Shown one piece after another: positions 18,432 through 54,021 of a stretch of 64,000 nucleotides of DNA. Under the pieces are notes generated by a model. That model saw nothing but the letters and a program-made list of their open reading frames with translations. It was not told the DNA's origin and searched no databases. The translations under genes were made by a program, and so were the position numbers. Location: assembly GCA_025594325.1 (NCBI GenBank), contig JANHCV010000004.1, positions 1,054,001 through 1,118,000 of the forward strand. The letters run 5' to 3'. The stretch is from Blastocladiella emersonii ATCC 22665. Taxonomy: Eukaryota; Fungi; Blastocladiomycota. Positions within the stretch are counted from its first letter, which is position 1. Each line of letters opens with the position of its first letter.

Positions 18432-18977
18432 TTAGGCGCCGCGGCGAGCGACCTTGGGCGCCCACTCCTCGACCTTGGGCTCGGTCGTGTTGTAGGGCTT
18501 GAAGCTGGCGGCGGTGCCTGAGGTGTTGGCCGTGTGCGGGGCGATCCACTGCGACTGCGGCAGCTGCGCCTTGAGCTCCTGCGGCGTGCGCGAGTCGGTG
18601 CGGTGGATCCACATGTGCCTGGAGGAGGGCGCGCGGAGCAGTGAGCGCGGGTCGGTTGGGAGCAGGGAGCGAGTATGGCGGCGTACCACTCGGCGGGGAT
18701 CTCCGAGGGGTCAAAGTTGCGCTTCGCGGGGACAACCCAGCGCTCGCGGACTAGCAAGAGTACACTGGAGGTCAGATCAATCGTTCGCCGTGCTAGCGAG
18801 GACGGCAAACGGACCCCAGAGCTCGGTCTTGGTGTTCTCGTAGTACTGGTTGCCCGCGGCGTCGGTGCCGATGAGGGTTCCGGCCTTGACCTCGCCGAGG
18901 GTCATCATCTGGTGCCAGGCCATGCGCGGGCCGACCTTGAGGATGTTGGTGACGTGGCGGGTGATCGAAAAGGACAT
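18432..18977 (-). CDS. NDUFA12: NADH:ubiquinone oxidoreductase subunit NDUFA12 (B17.2), 2 introns
   Basis: GTLIGTDAAGNQYYEN...|RERWV...DPSEIPAEW|HMWIHRT...PHTANTSGT...PYNTTEPKVEEW. Confidence 0.93.
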
Positions 18978-19255: not shown

Positions 19256-19707
19256 ATGTCTGCCGCCGCTGCCGCCACCGCGTCGCCACCAGGCACCGCG
19301 CCCGCCGCCGCCACCGACGCGGCCAACCCGAACGACGTGCTCGACCTGACCGAGCACGTCAAGCTCGTGTCGTCGGACGGCTTCGAGTTCATCCTCGACC
19401 GCCGGTGCGCCATGGCCTCGGGCGCCATCAAGGCCATGTTGTCGTCGCCCGCGCGCTTCGCCGAGTCGCACCACAACGTGATCGAGTTCAAGGACATCAA
19501 GTACGTTTTGGGGCGTGACTCGATGGATCGCTACCCCAGCACACTGACGCGACGCCGTCTAGGGCCGTGATCCTGGAAAAGGTGTGCCAATACTTGCACT
19601 ACAAGGTGCGCTTCACGAACTCGTCGACCGAGATCCCCGAGTTCGACCTCGGGTCGCCCGAGATCTACCTCGAGCTGCTCATGGCCGCCGACTTTCTCGA
19701 CTGCTGA
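19256..19707 (+). CDS. ELC1: Elongin C, 1 intron
   Basis: [28 protein letters not shown]...|[14 protein letters not shown]...EIPEF.....[14 protein letters not shown]. Confidence 0.95.
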
Positions 19708-20640
19708 GCGCGGTTTCCCCCTTGTACAAACTATCCCCCTCGCAGAATACACATGACTCCCGTTGACCGAAACACCGTGGATCGCTTCGTGGTCGACTGC
19801 CGTACACCGATGAGCTGTCCTACATCTCCAACGAGAGCGGGTGTGCGAGGAGCTGGAGGAAGGTCCGCGACAAGCACTGGTCGGCGCGTCGGCCAACACG
19901 CGGAGCGCGGTCGAGTCAAGTCCCGCCGCGCAGGCGCTCCCTTCTCTGCTCCCCCAAGAGCCCACACTGCCATGAAACCGCCTTTAACTTCTTGCAACTA
20001 TCTCTCGCGACACTGCTGTGCTTGATGCGCCATCCTGACGCGTGCCTCGTCGCAGCCCAACATCGCGAGTCCAGGCGACCCTGCATGGTTGTGCGTCACG
20101 CCCACGGTCCCAATAGAGACAAGTGATCTGCGCCTTGTTGCATCAGCAGACTTTTGTTTTTGCGTATCATGCTCCTTGGCCAGTCGCCATCAAAAGCGGT
20201 TTGGACTTGGTCGGCTTGGCGCGTCAAGCTCTGCTGCGAGGCCTGACGAATCGGTTGGCTTCCTGCGAGCCGCAAATGCCCCTTCCATCAATCTTCCGCG
20301 ATACGACGCACTCAAATCGTTAATTTGGCGCCGTGACTCGATTTGCATCAAAGATTCCGTACCAGCAGTGAAGTGGCCAAAGCGATTGGCGAGTGCTGAC
20401 TCGATCCGGAGCTGTATGCCTGCCTCTTCGCCAACTACCTTCTCCAGTCATGATGAGCCGGAGGAGCTTCATCCCTGCTTCCTAGACGACTTGTTTATGG
20501 ATTTCGACTCGCGCGGATCTCACTCATGATGTATCGCGCCACCTGATTTACGACTACCATCGACGTTGCTACATTCTCCGCACCCTTCGCTCGACGATTC
20601 GACCGACGGCCTTCGACCAGCTCTTTCCTTGTTGTCCTGC

Positions 20641-20733
20641 CGCGCGCTGTCCGGGCACCTGTCGTGCGAGCGCCATGAAAAGACCGCGCCGCTCGCACGA
20701 CCGGTGCCCTCGGTACAAATCTCACGGCGCGTG
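20641..20733. other. 93-nt long-hairpin element, copy 1 (candidate structured ncRNA or DNA hairpin)
   Basis: Outer stem cgcgcgctgt/acggcgcgtg. Inner stem gggcacc-t-gtcgtgcgagcg/cgctcgcacgac-c-ggtgccc. Loop ccatgaaaagaccgcgc. Confidence 0.75.
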
Positions 20734-21536
20734 GTGGTGGTGATCATTGATGGGCGTCGCAAGCAGCAGTCGGGGCTCAAGTTCGAGGAGCGTTGGTCCA
20801 TCGATTGCGCATTCTTTTTCTGCTTCGCTAGACGACGCTCTGTTTCTCGTGAGTGCAAGTTCGGTTCTATCGTTTTAAACTTGTGGGCTGTTGAAGCACG
20901 AGGCGCGCATCCCGAAACTGAGTGGAACCAGAACAATTTACGTTCTGGGTGTCGCCAGGAGCGGGTCATGCACGTTGCAATCCGGTACGTTATCCTGGCT
21001 AGCCGCTCATCATTGGGCCCTCACGTCCGCGTCTCCCTAGCCCAACCGTGAGCTCGGGCCTGGAGCCCACACAGCGCTTCCGTTGGAGCAGCGTGGGACC
21101 ACGAACTGTTACGTGGTTGGAGCAACGGCCGACTACTTTGTGGCTGTGAACCGGCTATTCAAGTGCGTCCGTGGTCCCGCAGCCCGCCCCTCCTCAAAAT
21201 GTGCGCACTTCTTCGAGTAAAGAAGCAGTTCTCTAACCAAGCGGCTCGAACACGTAGTATTGCGCAGTAGCAGCGAACTAGGTTGCTCCTCTCCTTGGTC
21301 AAGCGGCTTTTCAAATAGCACATGCACGGATCTTCAACATACTTTTGGCTTGACCGCTCTCGAAGCACGAGAACCAAGCATCTCAGCAATTATCATCGCG
21401 GTGTCGGTGCTCGCACTTGCCCGTTGGAGACTCACATGTCTTGTCCTGCCGTACTTTGTGATCTTCGTTTTCACACGCGGGAAGCGCCAAGTCCTAAACC
21501 ACGCGCGGGGTCCATGCCGCTCTCGCATAATCGCGT

Positions 21537-21629
21537 CGTGTGATGTATAGCCATCCCTCGTGCGAGAGCCGTGAAAAGACCGCGTCTCTCGCACGGGCGA
21601 TGCCCTCGGCACTAACCCCACAGCGCGCG
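21537..21629. other. 93-nt long-hairpin element, copy 2
   Basis: Ungapped alignment to copy 1 (offset 896). Stem cgtgcgagag/ctctcgcacg, loop ccgtgaaaagaccgcgt, outer stem cgtgtgatgt/acagcgcgcg. Confidence 0.75.
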
Positions 21630-22357
21630 ATGACGATGGCATTCGACGGAACTCCGCGATCTGCGGTCGGAGTCGGCGATGACCTTATTGATGCGGCGAT
21701 TGCGATAATCGTCGTTGTCTCGCAATAGTTTCTCGATTTTCGACGCATTTTCCTTCGGTCCTCCTCCCATCGAGCTGCTGAAAGCATGAGAGGACCGGTG
21801 TTGCTCGATGACTACTACAACGAGCAAGCGCGGATTCGCGAACAGCATCGCGTATAGTTGTTTGAACAAAGCCAAGAATGCGCGGGACTTTCAGCGCGCG
21901 AATCGCAGTGAGCTCATTGCTCAGGCCAAAGCGCAAGTTCAACGCGCAATGCGGTCTTACTCGTTTTGGACAAACTCGCTCTGGGTACGCCTTAATATCT
22001 GTTCTGCGAATCCGACTGACTGACAGAATTTTATTACTCGGCGCGTAGAAAGGAACAGTCTCGCTCGACAACATGCTTGCTTCGCAATCGCCTGTGCTCG
22101 GGGCCCAATCTTGAGGGAACTTCATTATCGCAGGGAGCGCTTGACGTTATTTCCTGCCGAGTGGCAAGGAGTACACGTAGCATGAAGCTTTTCTCGTTGT
22201 GCGTGTACGACACACGGAGTCGACGGGGTTCGTTCAATTCGACCTGCACGAGCACGTCTCGCTCGAAGCATCAGTTGAGAAGTCAAACCTGCACGCTTGG
22301 TTCATCATGGCTCTCGATCACCTCGCTTCAACAACCTTCTCCGCCCAACTCATCACT

Positions 22358-22450
22358 CGCGCGCCATCCGGGCACCACCCGTGCGGGTGCCGTGAAAAGG
22401 CCGCGTCGCTCGCACACGCGGTGCCCTTGGTTTTTTCTCCGCGACGCGCG
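22358..22450. other. 93-nt long-hairpin element, copy 3
   Basis: Ungapped alignment to copy 1 (offset 1717). Stems gggcacc/ggtgccc and gtgcgggtg/cgctcgcac, loop ccgtgaaaaggccgcgt. Confidence 0.75.
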
Positions 22451-22730
22451 ATGGTGATGATCGCGGACAGACTTGTTCCAGCGTTGGGAACAAGAATATA
22501 ACCATTTCAGCGATCTTCGTACGTGTGCGACTTTCGCTTCGGGGTCGGTGGTGTACGCGGCTCGGTCGACCTGCCGCGAGACGCGTCGCGATATCATGTG
22601 AGCCCTCAGCTGACCGAGTGTCTCGCGTTTCAAGACGCGACTGCTTCGCCGCTCCTCACATCTCAAAGAAACCAACCAGGTTTTGACGAAAAATAATAGG
22701 ATATTAAATAAACACATCAATCACGCCATC

Positions 22731-25700
22731 TCACCGCTGCCCGGGCGCCCCGTCCCCCGCATTCTGCTGTCCGCCTCCGTTTGCCGCTGACGGGAGACTG
22801 AGCGGGAGCGCGGGCGGGAGCGCGAACCGGCCCTGGCTGAGAAAGTTCTGCAGCTGGTCGGGCGGCGGCAGCGTGCCTGCGGCGAGCATCTGCTGGAACA
22901 GCTCGGGCGTGAACTGGGCGAGCGCGCCGGCCACGCCGGGCGCAACGGGTGCCGCAGGAACGGAAGCGGGAGCCGACGCCGTGAACCCCATGCTGCCCAT
23001 GCCCATGCCGAACCCCATGCCGCCGTTGTACGCCGCCGTGAACCCGGGCACCACCGCGGGCGCCGCGCCGCCGTACCCGGTGTTCGGGAGCGACAGGCCC
23101 GCGATCATGCCGGGGAACTGCGTGCCGCCGCCGCCGTACCCGCCGGGGACGGGGACGGTGGGCGGTGCGATGGTCGGGGGCGTACCGGCGTGCGCGGCAA
23201 CGCCGAGCGTCGAGGCGAGCTGCGACAGCGTGGCCGAGAGGTCGAGGACGGGCGCGACGACGGCCGGCGCGGGCGCCAGCGAGGACGCGAGGCTGCTCGG
23301 GACCGCGCTCGCGCCGCCGCTCGACCGGTCCCACTCGGCCTCGGACGCGAGCGCCGTGACGACCGGGTTCGGCGGGACCTGCTGCTGCTGGTTGTGCTGC
23401 TGGTGCTGATGGTGCGGGTTCGTCGAGACCGGCGACGGCGCGGGGGCGGGGAACGTGACGCCGGGCGGCGGGTTGCGGAGGGCGACGAGTACAGCGAGGA
23501 GCACGTCGTGCTTTCGGACGGGCGGGAGCGAGTGCGGGACCCACTTGAGGAACTCGGGCGCGGGGTCGCCGGGGCGCAGCGGGAACAGGTACATGTCCTT
23601 GAACAGGGCGCCGGGGAGCGCCGGGCCCTCGGGGGTGACGACGCCGTGGCGGCGCGCGTCGCGATAGAAGGCGAACAGCCGGTCGAGCTCATGCGCGGCG
23701 GCCTTGTGCTCGGCGGGCGCCATGGCGCTCGAGACGCCGGGGCGCACCTCGAACGCGAAGATCTCGCGCGACGTCGACGCGCGCAGACCCGTCAGGTACG
23801 ACTCGGCGGCTGCGGGGCGGATCCGGCCCGACAGCGACAGGTCGCGCGTGAAGTAGGCGCCGCGCCACGGCGTCTTGGTCGTGTCGATGATGCGGCCGGC
23901 GACCTGCACCAGCTTGATGGGCAGGAGAAAGTCGGGCGTCGTCGACTGCAGGAACCGGCCTGTCCACGCGACCGCGTCGGTGACCATGACCGAGGACGCG
24001 CGGCGCGACGGCGGCGACCGGACGTGGGCGTGTTCACGGTCGCGTCCGTGCGCGTGCGTGTGCGGCGGCGACCGGATCTGCGGCGGGGACATGGGGACCT
24101 GCGGCGGCGACATGGTGAGGTCGATCGTGTCCATAAAGTCGGCCATGTTTGACGCCGGCTGGTGGTGCGGGGCGGGCGGGGCCGAGCCGAAGATGGGCGT
24201 GACGCCGACGAGCTTGACCTCGTCATCGTCGTCGTCCTCGTCGAGCATGTCGGCAATGTTGTACTTTTTCGCCTCGCCGCCACCGTCGCGCGCGGGCATC
24301 TGCAGCGGCAGGTCCTCGAACGTGTCGACGCGCATCGGGTCGGCGAGCGCGGCCCCGCGGCCGCCGGCGACCGCGTCCATGTCGTCGGTGAGCAGCGACA
24401 TGTCAGCGCCGTACGCCTCGTTGCCGCGGGTGCGCGTGTGGCCGAGGTCGGCGTCAGCGTCGTCCTCGTCCACGTCAAAACCGCCGCCGACGACCGACGC
24501 GACAATCGACTCGGTGAGCGCCGTGTCGCGGAGCCCGCTGCGGCGGTACGTGGTGGACCCGCGGCGCCCGGTCGACGTACCGGCGGCTGCGTCGTCCGAC
24601 TTTGCCCCGGCGGCGCCGCCGATCAGGTCGTCGAGCGAGACACTGCCCGAGTGCTGCGGGGTGTTGGACCCGCTGCCCTCGTTGCGGCGCTGCATGAGGA
24701 ACTGCGCGAGGTCGTCCTCGACCTGCGGCAGCGACGTGAGGGGCTCGGCGGTGATCTGCTCGGTCACGTCGGTCGCGACCGTGAGGACGGCCTGCGTCGC
24801 CGAGGCGGTCGACAGGGCACCACCCGCCGCGGCAGCAGCAGCAGCGGCGGCAGCCGCAGCCAGATCAAGGCGGCCCGTCGAGCTGCCGGCGGACGCGGGC
24901 GTGCCGGTGCCGCTGCCCGCGGGCGCATCGACGGCGACGGACCCGATACGCGAGGGCCGGCTGCGGAGCGGGGACGTGATCGACCCGACAGAGTCGGTCC
25001 GTCGCGGGGACGTGGACCGCGGTGCGCCGATCGCGCGGGAGAAGGCGTCGTCGTCGGTAGCAGCGGCGCCCGACCGGCGCACCTCGACGTCACCCTTGTG
25101 TGTCTTCTTGATGAGGGTATCGTCGTCGCGGGTCTGGCGGACCGTCTGCTCGAGCGAGAGGGCCTTGACGCGCTCGCGCTCGCGCATGGCGTCGTCCGAG
25201 AACTCGGCGGGGTCGAGCATGACGAGCGCCGCGGGGGTCCAGGCGCGGGCGCGCAGGTGCGTGCGCAGGCGGGCGAGCTTGGCGTTCTTGAGCGACAGCA
25301 GCAGCGTGCGGGCCTGCGACTTGTACCCGGCCTCGCGCGCGGAGCCGAGCAGGCCGTGGACGCGGACGCGGTGCGTGGTCACGGCGGGCGCGGCGCCGCG
25401 CGGCGAGGGGAGCGCGAGGGCGGGCACCTCGACGAGCTCGGCGGGCGGCGCGTACTTGTCGTAGAGGGCCTCCTCGAGCAGTTGCGCCAAGTGCGCGGCG
25501 TCGGCGTCGGTCCACGTCGCGGCGGCGGCGGCGGCGGCGACCTCGGGCGGGGTGGTCGGGGCGGCGGCGTGTGCATCAGATTCATCATGAAGCGGCGGGA
25601 GGGAGGGGGGAGGGGGCGGGGACAACAAAAACGGCTTGAGCGCGGCGGCGAACAGGTCGCGGAACTTGGTGCGCGGCGGTCTCTCCTTGGCCGCCACGGC

Positions 25701-27196
25701 GCGCTCGGCGCCGCGCTGTCTCTCGAGCGCCGACGCCGCGCGGTGGTGGGCCGCCGCTATATTACTACAGTCCCCTGAACAGAACCACGCCGCCGCGTGC
25801 ATCGACGCGAGCGACGACCGCGTGCCCATGCCGGGCCCCGTCGTCGCCGGCCGGTCGCACCCGGGCAGGCTGCACGTTGCGCGCACGCGCTTGTGCGCGG
25901 GCTCGCCGGCCGCGGGCCGCGGCGCGCTGGACGACAGCGACGAGCGCGGCGCGGGCGTGTAGCTGCCGTCATCATCGTCGTCATCATCCTCCTCGGTCTC
26001 GCCGGCCATGGACGACGACACGCCGGGCGCGGGCGACGACCGCGACACGGGCGACGACGAGTACAGGGACCGCTTCGACGGCAGGCTGAGCACCGCCGAC
26101 GCCGGGATGTGGATGCCGAGCGGGATCGTCTGGCGCCGCGGCACGAGCTTCGGGCCCGTCGCCGGGGTCGCGGACGACGCCGACGGCGTGGACGCGGAGG
26201 AAGTGGACGCGCGGCGCGGCGGAACGCCTTTTGTGCGACCGAGAAACGCAGCAAACGGCGTGTTGTTGGATTCGGGGGTCGGGGCCGACGGCGGCGAGTA
26301 GGGCGCAGGTGCAGGGCGGTGCACGCGGACGAGTGATTGGGCCGATGATGGAGTGGTGGAGGGCGGCGACGGCGGGAGCGAGTCGGCGGAGCGCGCGAGC
26401 GAGCACGTCGACGCGGCGGGCGACGATGGCGGCGAGGAAGATCGCACGAGCATGGTTGGCAGGGCGTGGGGTGGCAGGTGAGAGAAATAGACGGATCGGG
26501 GAGCAGTCGGGTTAGCTCTAGCTTCGTGGGCGCCGGTGTGCGCGGGGGAGGAGCAGAAAGCGCGGGGAGAAGGGAGTCGATGCCGCGGGGAAGGGCCGCG
26601 TGGCCACAACACGGAGCCGGAGTGGGAACGCGTCTCCCACCACCGCCGAGTCAGAGGACCCCGCTGCCACCCCGAACCCGGACATGGTCCAGCAACGAGG
26701 TCTCCCTTGACGCAGAAGCAGGCTGAAAAAATAGTGGGGGAAGCGGCGTACCGTTGACGTTGGCGCCGAGCGCGGCCGACGACCCCGAGCAGTTGATGCA
26801 GAACCAGTGCTCGTTCTGGTGCGTCTCAATGTAGTCGACCTGGGACGGATCGAGACCCATGCAATCGGCGTGGAACCTACGCGGGTCGGTGAGCGAGACG
26901 AGGGCGGCGGGAGGAAGTCAGCACGCTTCGTTCAAGCACTGCGTGACACGCAGTGTAACGCACCAATCTTGACATTTATCGCACATGACCATGGACCGCC
27001 CGTCCTCCTTCTGACGGCAGACGCAGTACAGCGTGTCGCCGTCGTCCTCTCCGTGGTCGTTGGCCGGCGACGATGCCGCGGACTCGCGAAGCTCCGACAA
27101 CGTGTCCTGGGTCACCGTCGACAGCGACGATCCCGGGCGCGAGAGATCGGCCGCCGGGACGAGGTCGGGAACGGCAGATTGCAAGTCGGCCGCCAT
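22731..27196 (-). CDS. BYE1/PHF3/DIDO1-like protein: PHD finger, CxxPGC..CSxDC motif, TFIIS-central domain, SPOC domain
   Basis: PHD: LYCVCRQKEDGRSMVMCDKCQDW|FHADCMG...WFCINC. TFIIS-M: YKSQARTLLLSLKNAK...LVMLDPAEF. SPOC: WTGRF...LSGRI...YL...KDMYLFP. The exon joining at about 26.45-26.75 kb is uncertain. Confidence 0.8.
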
Positions 27197-46654: not shown

Positions 46655-48812
46655 CTAGTTGAGGAACCCGCCAGTCCCGTTGGTCGTCCACGCAACACCA
46701 GCCGCCGCGCCCGTCGCCGCCGGGGGAGCAGCGGGACCGCCGCGCGGCGCCGACTGGGGCGGCAGGACCGCCGGCGGGCGGGGCGCGAGCGCGGGCAGCG
46801 TGCGCAGGGGCGCCGGAGCCGGGGCCATTTCCGGGCGCGAGACGGTAAACGACGAGGCCGTAAACCCGAACGGCGCGGGGCCGCCAAAAAACGACGACGA
46901 CGACGGGCCGAACCGGGCGGCAGCGGTGGCGGCCGTCGAAGTCGCAGGCGCGAGCGACGCGTACGACGACGTCTTCGGGATCACGCCCGTCGGGCGCGGC
47001 TGGATCGCGCGGTGCGCCGCAGCGGCAGCAGCGCCGGCGTGCTGGTACGGCTGGGCCGGGAGGAGGTGCGGCAGCGGCGTCGTGGGCGGGGTCGGCGTGG
47101 CCATGGCGGCCGCCGACATCGCGAACGCCGGCTGCTGGTGCGGCTGCTGGTACTGGGGAGCAGCAGCAGCGGGATAATACGCCGACGGGGCCGCGGTACA
47201 ATAAACCGACGACGACGAGGGGGCCCCGTCGGCCATGGTAATTGGTACTCGGTGCGGCGCAGGTACGATGCTCGCCGGCGACGGCGACGACGGGGCCGAC
47301 GCGTGCTGGTGCTGCGGCGGGGCAGCGCCGCCCGGGACGTGGCGGGTGCCGCACCCGGCGCAGGCGCACGGCGCGTCGCCCGAGGTGGGGACGGCAGAGT
47401 GGGCGGCCGGAGCGGGGAGGGCCGAGCCCATGGGCGGCGCGGGCGACGAGTTGGCCGAGACGGGAACGGCGGTCTGGTGGCCGACGGCGGGCGAGCCGGG
47501 GAGGGACACGGGGGCAGCCTGCTGCTGCTGCTGCTGCTGCTGGGCGACCGAGTGGCCAACGATGGGCGACGAGGCGGCCGAGGTGGGCGCCGGGGCAATC
47601 AGGGGCGAGCCCGGATCGGGCTTGGGCGCGACGGGGCTGCCCGAGACGGCAGCGTGGTGGGCGCGGCGCTGGGCGATGCCGACCTCGATGAGCTTCCAGT
47701 CGACGCCGCGCTCGACGAGCATCTCGCGCATGACGTTGCGCTCGACGAGGAGCTCCTCGGTCTGGGCGACGAGCTGGCGCACAAAGTCGACGGTCATGCG
47801 CAGCGTGTTGGCCTTGTTGAGGGCGGCACCCTGGTGGATCGAGTACGGTAGTAGCTCCGATAGGTCCGTGATGGACTGGTTGATCTGGTCTGTGGGGCGG
47901 GAAACGGCGCATCAGTGGTCCGATCACGACGCGACGCGCCACACGCCAGGAAACGTACCGCGGCGGCGGCGCTCGATGACGTTGTGGCTCGCGCGGCGGA
48001 GGCGCTGCTGCTCGCGCTCCTCTTCCTCGGTCGTGTGGCTCTGGCTGTGGTTGGGCGCGAGTCGCGGTGGTTAGTCACGGCCGCGTGTGCGAGTCATGAG
48101 GCGCGCGCGCGAACAACGAATGAAAAATCGGTCGCGTGCAAGGAAGGAGTCGAAGTCGCGGAGGTGGCCACATGGCCCCGTGGCGGCGGCGGCGACTGTT
48201 TTTAAGCCGGTGGCCAGTCGCCGCCGGCCATGCACGCTTGCGAGAGCGATACGACCCCAGCATGGCCGATTAAACGAGAGGACAAGGGGGAGTGGCGAGA
48301 AGGCGGGCGGCTGGCCGACGCCGCCGAGGACGACGACGACAGAACCGGGCGGAGGAAAGGAGTGCGGAGGCGAAGGAGCGGGAAGTTTTCCGATCACCGT
48401 CGAAGCAAACGTACTTGAGGATGTTGACGCCGCTGACGAGGTAGACCATCTTGCGCGGGCGGCCGCGCTTGCGCTTCGGGACAAGGTCCATGTCGTCGTC
48501 GTCGACGGGCGGCGGCGGCACGCCCATGGGCACGCCGGCGAGCGGGGCGCCGGTGGCCGCGGCAGCGGGGCTACCGCCAGGAGTACCGGTAGCCGCAGGA
48601 GCAACGGCCATCGGCTCGGTAGGGTGGGCCATCACCATCGAGCCCGAGCCCGAGTGCGTCGACGACACGGAGCTCGCACGGCTCGAAGCATGGTCGGCGG
48701 CGATCGCCGAGGCGTGCGCGGCAGCAGCGGCCTTCCACGCAGCCGCGTCGTTGGCGGCAGGGTGGCCTTGCGGCGAGGGATGGTGGTGATCGGCAGTGGC
48801 ACCGGCGGGCAT
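46655..48812 (-). CDS. bHLH transcription factor with an AT-hook-like motif, 2 introns
   Basis: KRKRGRPRK, then RRASHNVIERRRR|DQINQSITDLSELLP...NKANTLRMTVDFVRQL, then a Q/P/A-rich tail. Confidence 0.85.
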
Positions 48813-53517: not shown

Positions 53518-54021
53518 TTAGTGGAAGCGGGCCTGGCACGCCTTGAGCATGTCAAAGTAGTAGTTGCACGTGGTGGGCTCCGAGGGGTTGGCCTCCATGC
53601 ACTTCATGTACGCCTTGAGGTCGGCCTCGCACGCGCCGCCGGCCTGGGTCGCGGGCGCGTCGCCGTAGTACGTGGGCGCGGGCGGCGCCTGCTGCTGGGG
53701 CTGCGACGACGAGCCGCCGCCGAACATGCTGGTCAGGCCGGCGCCGATCGTGTGGCCGACCGCCGAACCGACGGCAACGCCGGCCGCGGTCGTCGCCATC
53801 TGGGCGAACAGGCCGGGCTGGGCGGGCGCGGCGGCAGCGGGCGCGGGCATCGGGGCAGCGGGCGCGGCGGCCGTCGGCGTGTGCGTGTGGTGCATGGCCG
53901 GGGCGGCAGCGGCGGGCGCAGCGACCGTCGAGGCGGGGCGCGCGGGCGCGGCCATGGTCGAGGCCGGGCGGGCGGGGGCGGCGGTGCGCGCGGGCGCGGC
54001 AACACGGGACTTGCGGGCCAT
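53518..54021 (-). CDS. MIX17: CHCHD2/Mix17 twin CX9C mitochondrial protein
   Basis: QPGLFAQMATTAAGVAVGSAVGHTIG, then C-X9-C...C-X9-C. Confidence 0.95.
   Translation of the reverse strand: MARKSRVAAPARTAAPARPASTMAAPARPASTVAAPAAAAPAMHHTHTPTAAAPAAPMPAPAAAAPAQPGLFAQMATTAAGVAVGSAVGHTIGAGLTSMFGGGSSSQPQQQAPPAPTYYGDAPATQAGGACEADLKAYMKCMEANPSEPTTCNYYFDMLKACQARFH

Follow-up and report, generated by a model that had tools for sequence, protein, structure and literature searches.

The window analysed here is a 64-kb stretch of nuclear DNA of the fungus Blastocladiella emersonii ATCC 22665, corresponding approximately to positions 1,054,001–1,118,000 of contig JANHCV010000004.1 (assembly GCA_025594325.1). 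In a gene-free island it carries three copies of a 93-nt hairpin (Table 1), which belong to the kind of interspersed hairpin-forming repeats. The feature is real and goes beyond chance; it has no counterpart among Rfam families or in the searchable literature, and a literature search on Blastocladiella hairpins retrieved nothing relevant. The interpretation we favour, with a probability of about 0.45, is that the hairpin forms the core of a non-coding repeat family derived from a mobile element, and that the + strand hairpin works in single-stranded form, most likely as RNA, and is recognised through its loop.

Copies, fold and compensatory changes

The three 93-nt blocks align without gaps, with 56 of 93 columns invariant and a mean column identity of 86%. 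A repeat finder retrieved the same copies as one family, in a shared orientation and spaced by 896 and 821 bp, copies 2 and 3 being 73–75% identical to copy 1, and blastn between copies gave pairwise E values from 1e-14 to 1e-18. The three gapless copies and their spacing had been reported in a preliminary description of the window, and both the alignment and the repeat finder confirm them. The same description had seen no comparable similarity in the intervening DNA; indeed, local alignment of the DNA between the copies stayed at the level of dinucleotide shuffles (z scores from −0.8 to +0.9). A covariance model built from the copies scored 125.8, 119.3 and 118.7 bits for copies 1, 2 and 3 on the + strand, and 36.3, 27.2 and 24.0 bits, respectively, on the − strand. 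Neither this model nor a degenerate pattern admitting three mismatches found a fourth copy in the window. A possible decayed fourth copy near 19830, seen as an inverted match at a spacing of ~830 bp, was dropped, having no covariance-model match at E ≤ 10.

The 5' edge of the homology is sharp and falls at the first base of the hairpin. On the 3' side the homology fades 12–40 nt past the 93-nt limits given in the preliminary description. G, A and T predominate in the conserved tail that follows the hairpin (of the GATGGTGATGA type), and blastn of 20641–20773 against 21537–21670 gave 71% identity over 135 nt. The second small hairpins described after copies 2 and 3 are present in the sequence, but folding gave them no statistical support (z scores from −0.3 to −1.4).

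Conservation across the 93 nt is very uneven. In the apical 36 nt, 30 positions (83%) are invariant, against 9 of the outer 22 nt of the hairpin (41%) and 2 of 14 (~14%) on the 3' side of the internal loop, which is near saturation. The 17-nt loop of the preliminary description, said to differ at three positions, does exactly so: it is invariant at 14 of 17 positions, copies 2 and 3 having exactly the CCGTGAAAAG loop and copy 1 CCATGAAAAG. In the consensus fold this segment corresponds to an apical stem plus its loop.

As + strand RNA, the three copies share one fold (113 nt folded, −51 to −65 kcal/mol), as had been described, with z scores against shuffles of −5.6 for copy 1 (−65.4 kcal/mol), −4.5 for copy 2 and −3.6 for copy 3. 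From the foot upward, the consensus consists of a GC-rich outer stem of 9–13 bp, an asymmetric internal loop (2–3 nt versus ~14 nt), and a core whose 7-bp and 12-bp stems are each followed by a 1x1 mismatch, the first of which is present in every copy. At the tip of the core, a 4-bp apical stem with a U-G pair in all three copies closes a 7-nt loop, AAAAGRC. The position already noticed as mismatched in all copies is present, as T/C, C/C and A/C.

Standard pairs fill 92.1% of the 114 cells of the consensus structure, a value reached by none of 500 shuffles, and when the partners are slid by 1–3 columns pairing falls to 25–56%. At 5 of the 38 pairs both sides change with pairing kept, which was equalled in 18 of 500 shuffles; we take these controls as support and not as proof. 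The three both-sided changes reported between copies 1 and 2 were found at columns 43/63, 33/73 and 30/76 of the alignment (A3). The middle helix GGGCACC ... GGTGCCC is common to copies 1 and 3, and copy 2 has two broken pairs there. Pairing that would lengthen the outer stem past the 93 nt reached significance in copy 3 only, where 3% of the island 14-mers pair equally well; since it was not significant for copies 1 and 2, it is not claimed as a shared feature. The proposal that both the pairing and the loop are under selection is supported by the both-sided changes, by the overall level of pairing and by the distance between the conservation of the apical part and that of the internal loop. 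As judged from the three aligned sequences, structure and loop thus appear to be preserved better than neutral positions.

Two further observations concern copy 2. Its outer 5' arm (21537–21556, compared with 20641–20660) differs from that of copies 1 and 3 mainly by CpG-to-TpG changes, with CGCGCG becoming CGTGTG, and the 3' arm retains CGCGCG; these changes leave G-U pairs, and may reflect strand-biased deamination or a tolerance of such pairs. Its flanks, and those of no other copy, contain two short direct repeats whose order is exchanged between the two sides, TCTCGCA before ATAATCG upstream (21521–21536) and ATAATCG before TCTCGCA about 170–185 nt downstream (21797–21817), an arrangement that is not a simple target-site duplication.

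Dispersal, strand and active molecule

The preliminary description had treated the element as local. On the contrary, its core recurs on other contigs of the same genome. When the DNA contig sets of one sample were compared with the locus at 80% likeness, other contigs matched the core only, at 20662–20712, 20670–20716, 20671–20709, 22359–22412, 22383–22427 and 22389–22427. These matches cover 39–54 nt with 4–9 differences (80–90% identity), and the core is carried by at least five further contigs (records 10–15, 0.9–48 kb) of the deepest DNA run. The 30-nt flanks of the matches hold an outer stem, GCGCTG ... CAGCGC, followed by GATG. The middle helix on the other contigs reads GGGCCGCAC ... 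GTGTGGCCC in place of the GGGCACC ... GGTGCCC of copies 1 and 3; both sides differ and the pairing is kept, thus indicating a further compensation, with one more G-T pair on the + strand. One of the other-contig copies, judged by its flanks, apparently has no 5' arm and consists of the loop and the 3' arm only. Based on these sequence matches, the three blocks are one local cluster of a genome-wide hairpin family. Exact-pattern scans of metagenome and viral collections gave 0 matches, which carries little weight since these collections hold no fungal genomes.

The strand had been left unassigned in the preliminary description, on the ground that G-T and A-C mismatches are both present. This is only partly so, as the + strand is modestly favoured: the consensus pairs include 15 G-T cells against 4 A-C cells, and 92.1% of the cells are paired on the + strand, whereas the − strand mirror of the structure pairs 82.5%. 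Sums of minimum free energies hardly separate the two strands (−173 on +, −169 on −). When DNA energy parameters are used, folding remains strong in copy 1 (z −5.4) but is weak in copy 2 (z −2.1), and copy 3 does not adopt the common fold (z +0.46). Since copies 2 and 3 fold poorly as DNA, the shared structure seems to depend on G-U pairs; these energy models, which are no measurement, favour RNA over single-stranded DNA as the probable active form.

Interpretation and alternatives

The 57-nt core hairpin sits inside a module of ~93–135 nt. If the family derives from a mobile element, this hairpin would be the functional cis-element of a non-coding repeat and would be active when the + strand is single-stranded, most likely as transcribed RNA. 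A protein could read the asymmetric loop together with the U-G-bearing apical stem, while the long stems would need only to pair. Copies would have spread both locally and to other loci; the hairpin would then have been retained, either in place or through selection acting between propagating lineages, with the remainder of each unit decaying beyond recognition. The setting, a lower-GC unannotated island whose flanks cannot be aligned, is junk-like and was counted in favour of this interpretation.

Several points weigh against it. There is no transposon hallmark, neither a consistent target-site duplication nor terminal conservation, and no transposase, reverse transcriptase, recombinase or Rep/helicase was found in the island or is annotated within 10 kb. 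The single orientation and the ~0.85-kb spacing fit an old tandem duplication with selection in place, thus pointing to a host function rather than to a selfish one. The excess of G-T over A-C, when counted by columns, is 12 to 4 (two-sided p = 0.08), a modest + strand bias, and the strand comparison used a structure that had been predicted on the + strand. A run search located the locus in four DNA contig sets of one sample, with no RNA run among the matches. Finally, the full copies aligned are only three, all from this locus, and shuffle controls on three related sequences overstate significance.

Among known systems, the closest functional analogues would be bacterial repetitive extragenic palindromes, organellar mobile hairpins, and the recognition hairpins of transposons and retroelements. 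Repetitive extragenic palindromes (REP/BIME elements) are 20–40 nt long and are mobilised by RAYT transposases of the HUH type. The Blastocladiella repeats may be likened to them as short imperfect palindromes, dispersed and clustered, intergenic, in one orientation per cluster, non-coding and with a conserved hairpin. REP elements, however, are bacterial and tied to a RAYT gene, whereas the present hairpin is nuclear, 93 nt long, endowed with a conserved 17-nt loop region, and has no HUH gene in sight nearby. Small non-coding hairpin repeats that spread within a genome and occupy intergenic positions are also known from organelles, as the double-hairpin elements of Allomyces mitochondria and the repetitive hairpin-forming elements of sponge mitochondria (PMC2800124). 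Allomyces belongs to the same phylum, Blastocladiomycota, and the succession of a large and a small hairpin at our locus recalls the double hairpin. By description, with no sequence comparison involved, the organellar elements differ in being mitochondrial, AT- or GC-cluster-like and shorter, whereas our locus is nuclear and flanked by DONSON, Rrp15, Skp1-like and SPOC genes.

In accordance with a check made for the termini of known transposons, none was recognisable. Miniature inverted-repeat transposable elements (MITEs) and foldback elements are similarly short, non-coding, multicopy, intergenic and almost wholly made of hairpin; yet conservation in MITEs is highest at the termini, and target-site duplications flank them. 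Here no direct repeat of at least 5 nt occurs at consistent offsets round the three copies, the centre and not the termini is best conserved, the matches at other loci cover the core only, and the 3' tail makes the module asymmetric; this class was therefore rejected. Helitrons and Helentrons resemble the family in keeping a hairpin with covarying stems among subfamilies, in producing no target-site duplication and in possibly forming head-to-tail non-autonomous units. Their canonical 3' hairpin, however, measures 16–20 nt and lies 10–12 nt before a CTRR end, their 5' end is TC, and they insert at A|T or T|T. Our hairpin is 93 nt long, in no copy is the large or the small hairpin followed by a CTRR within 15 nt, no conserved 5' TC end exists, and the 5' flanks are unrelated. 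A canonical Helitron or Helentron end was excluded on these grounds, besides the absence of an annotated Rep/helicase within the 10 kb. Lastly, the 3' stem-loops of stringent long interspersed nuclear elements (LINEs) and of their short interspersed (SINE) partners could be compared with the present hairpin for the conserved loop, the covarying stem, the multicopy state and the action as RNA of one strand. The differences are that no poly(A) or simple-repeat tail, target-site duplication or reverse transcriptase was seen with the Blastocladiella hairpin, and that its sharp edge is at the 5' and not at the 3' side.

A possible, although rather unlikely, alternative is a structured non-coding RNA of the host, each block being a small gene or a cis-acting RNA module of a multicopy family with a role in the cell, for instance as a protein-binding hairpin. 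A unit of ~0.85 kb would have been tandemly duplicated long ago, and purifying selection would have preserved the blocks where they stand. The evidence from structure, loop, strand and folding as RNA or DNA is the same as for a mobile-element-derived family. The regular spacing and shared orientation fit in addition, as does the loss of all similarity in the flanks while the hairpin keeps ~75% identity, and the middle helix of copies 1 and 3, differing from the version found elsewhere, makes the cluster look locally derived. Host genes of this sort are harder to reconcile with the absence of any Rfam family even at E ≤ 10, of a shared promoter or terminator signature, and of an RNA run among those matching the locus. 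Moreover, a T6 run inside the hairpin of copy 3 would stop RNA polymerase III, the middle helix of copy 2 has its two broken pairs, and some of the copies elsewhere in the genome seem incomplete, which is closer to the behaviour of decaying repeats than to that of genes.

It is somewhat less probable still, and we put it forward only tentatively, that the hairpins are nuclear structured RNAs of a new class, in a fungus of early-diverging lineage, and that this multicopy loop-recognised hairpin has a host function. Such a hairpin could serve, for example, as a binding platform for an RNA-binding protein, or as a signal for the processing or the boundaries of intergenic transcripts. Selection would hold it in place while its surroundings decay, and it would count among several such hairpin families, with which the B. 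emersonii genome seems to be populated.

More doubtful is a function as a single-stranded DNA site, namely an origin, a terminus or a recombination site read by an HUH-type enzyme (Helitron-like, rolling-circle) or by another recombinase, in which the three copies would mark head-to-tail non-autonomous units. An invariant asymmetric loop on covarying stems is the pattern of rolling-circle origins, such as geminivirus and CRESS origins and the ends of IS200/IS605 elements, and by analogy the Blastocladiella loop and stems may be read in the same way. The shared orientation and the missing target-site duplication would suit elements that make none, and the strand bias would fit too, since DNA hairpins also tolerate G-T pairs. 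On the other side stand the DNA-parameter folds of copies 2 and 3, the missing CTRR and 5' TC ends, and the absence of a Rep/helicase, an integrase or a Pfam-matching open reading frame (ORF) from the island, none of these enzymes being annotated within 10 kb either. The cassette idea put forward in the preliminary description, with the hairpins as attC-like sites delimiting units of about 0.8 kb, is the extreme form of this alternative and found no backing: the locus is eukaryotic and nuclear, and the intervals contain no cassette-like ORF, in that no ORF there has a Pfam match. An integron attC array was rejected on the same grounds, the host being a fungus with no recombinase annotated within 10 kb of the island, and also on the conserved R''/R' core sites of such arrays (RYYYAAC ... 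GTTRRRY), as the foot of the hairpin is CGCGCG/CGCGCG-like in all three copies and no GTTRRRY occurs at the boundaries.

We consider it improbable that the copies are functionless relic palindromes, in which pairing was kept not by selection but by template switching in quasi-palindromes or by gene conversion among copies. Template switching can indeed both generate and preserve perfect stems and, in a single step, give rise to changes that look compensatory (PMC8794818), both-sided pair changes number only 5 among three sequences, and the copies lie in decaying, unannotated DNA. However, the loop is non-palindromic, almost invariant (14/17) and kept on other contigs too, which template switching leaves unexplained. 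It does not account for the excess of G-T over A-C or for the conserved unpaired 3' tail either, and within the same 93 nt the neutral positions approach saturation.

A decayed protein-coding repeat or a microRNA-like precursor is very hard to sustain: several frames are open across all three copies and the weak Rfam look-alikes are microRNA hairpins (E 0.6–1.1, far below gathering), but the 52 variable columns of the 117-nt alignment split 18/17/17 over codon positions in every frame, which largely refutes a coding repeat, and the loop is here the most conserved part, opposite to the conserved arms and free loop expected of microRNA precursors. The even distribution over codon positions agrees with the absence of a coding-repeat bias for which the locus was checked. 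None of the ten ORFs overlapping the hairpins is a called protein in a collection of 15 billion proteins, a word search of the same collection with the best-conserved hairpin frame gave no match, and none of the 17 island ORFs matched Pfam at E ≤ 0.1.

Structured RNA classes were searched as well. At gathering thresholds, Rfam 15 gave 0 matches in the whole window, with hammerhead, HDV-like, twister, pistol, hatchet, small nucleolar RNA (snoRNA), microRNA and selenocysteine insertion sequence (SECIS) models included. At E ≤ 10, the region 20500–22750 yielded only three matches of ~20 bits (mir-7964, mir-1986 and TB10Cs1H2), to be compared with gathering scores of 50–80, which bears out the preliminary description, where no match to the tRNA, SECIS, hammerhead, HDV-like or group II D5 consensus had been seen by eye. 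No tRNA or transfer-messenger RNA gene was found. An H/ACA snoRNA was rejected, since no ANANNA or terminal ACA stands in register in the linker or tail, and the internal loop is 2–3 nt versus ~14 nt; the only likeness is a 20-bit chance match to a trypanosomatid H/ACA model, on the − strand. A C/D snoRNA was excluded by the box positions and by Rfam. Taken as a whole, the interpretation given in the preliminary description is partly supported.

Blastocladiomycota are almost unexplored for non-coding RNA and mobile DNA, and a hairpin family conserved at its centre and not at its ends fits neither the usual transposon classes nor any Rfam family. If transcribed, the hairpin would represent a new protein–RNA recognition module; were it the cis-site of some mobile element, this element would spread with no target-site duplication and would need only ~60–130 nt.

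The island and its neighbourhood

The island, with a GC content of 56% against ~70% in the adjoining genes, lies between a Skp1/elongin-C-like gene on the + strand, ending at 19707, and a BYE1/SPOC-like gene on the − strand, ending at 22731. The NCBI annotation places no gene between these two positions, in agreement with the gene-free island seen from the sequence alone. The BYE1/SPOC-like gene (22731–26612, −) has SPOC and TFIIS_M matches, and the genes annotated within 10 kb comprise LRR, CTLH, DONSON, Rrp15p, NDUFA12, Skp1_POZ and BYE1/SPOC-like ones. The DONSON homologue of the window is 100% identical to H9P43_004108 of B. emersonii ATCC 22665.

Table 1. Positions of the island, the hairpin copies, their 3' tails and a further multicopy stretch (numbered along the window)
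Feature	Positions	Strand	Remarks
Gene-free, lower-GC island	19708–22730		3.0 kb, between two convergent genes
Hairpin copy 1, 93 nt	20641–20733	+	Core (inner stem plus loop, 57 nt) at 20653–20709
Conserved 3' tail, copy 1	20734–20773	+	Tail and beyond align to 21630–21670 of copy 2
Hairpin copy 2, 93 nt	21537–21629	+	Core at 21549–21605
3' tail, copy 2	21630–21673	+	Small hairpin 21651–21656 / 21668–21673, z −0.26
Hairpin copy 3, 93 nt	22358–22450	+	Core at 22370–22426; 281 nt past the stop of the BYE1/SPOC-like gene (opposite strand)
3' tail, copy 3	22451–22494	+	Small hairpin 22472–22479 / 22487–22494, predicted 8-bp stem, z −1.1 on +
Second multicopy stretch	22564–22602	+	Holds GAGACGCGTCGCGA, an ACGCGT box

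The second multicopy stretch downstream of copy 3 is also present in several copies in the genome, as indicated by extra contigs at these positions, and one further contig has a hairpin copy with a stretch like it downstream (joint 22427->22575). It may or may not be part of the hairpin module. With its ACGCGT (MluI-box-like) core, the motif GAGACGCGT(Y)(S)CGA occurs five times in the window against 0.68 expected, at 22578, 26623 (−), 27466 (−), 53205 and 53230. Its orientation tracks that of the downstream gene, namely the BYE1-like gene on the − strand and a + strand gene starting near 53672, and it thus looks like a promoter element.

Three minor observations concern other parts of the window. 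A small NDUFA12 gene (18432–18977, −) lies between the Rrp15 and the Skp1-like genes, where no long bacterial-style ORF hinted at it. A word-based search with residues 360–1060 of the BYE1/SPOC-like protein returned no match, not even the protein itself, low-complexity words having crowded the candidates, so that this blank is uninformative. At 47182–47233 an unrelated 12-bp perfect inverted repeat, GCCGACGGGGCC / GGCCCCGTCGGC, encloses a loop of ~27 nt; it gave a marginal match to the covariance model (E 0.055), and its fold (z −1.7) is no better than that of shuffles.

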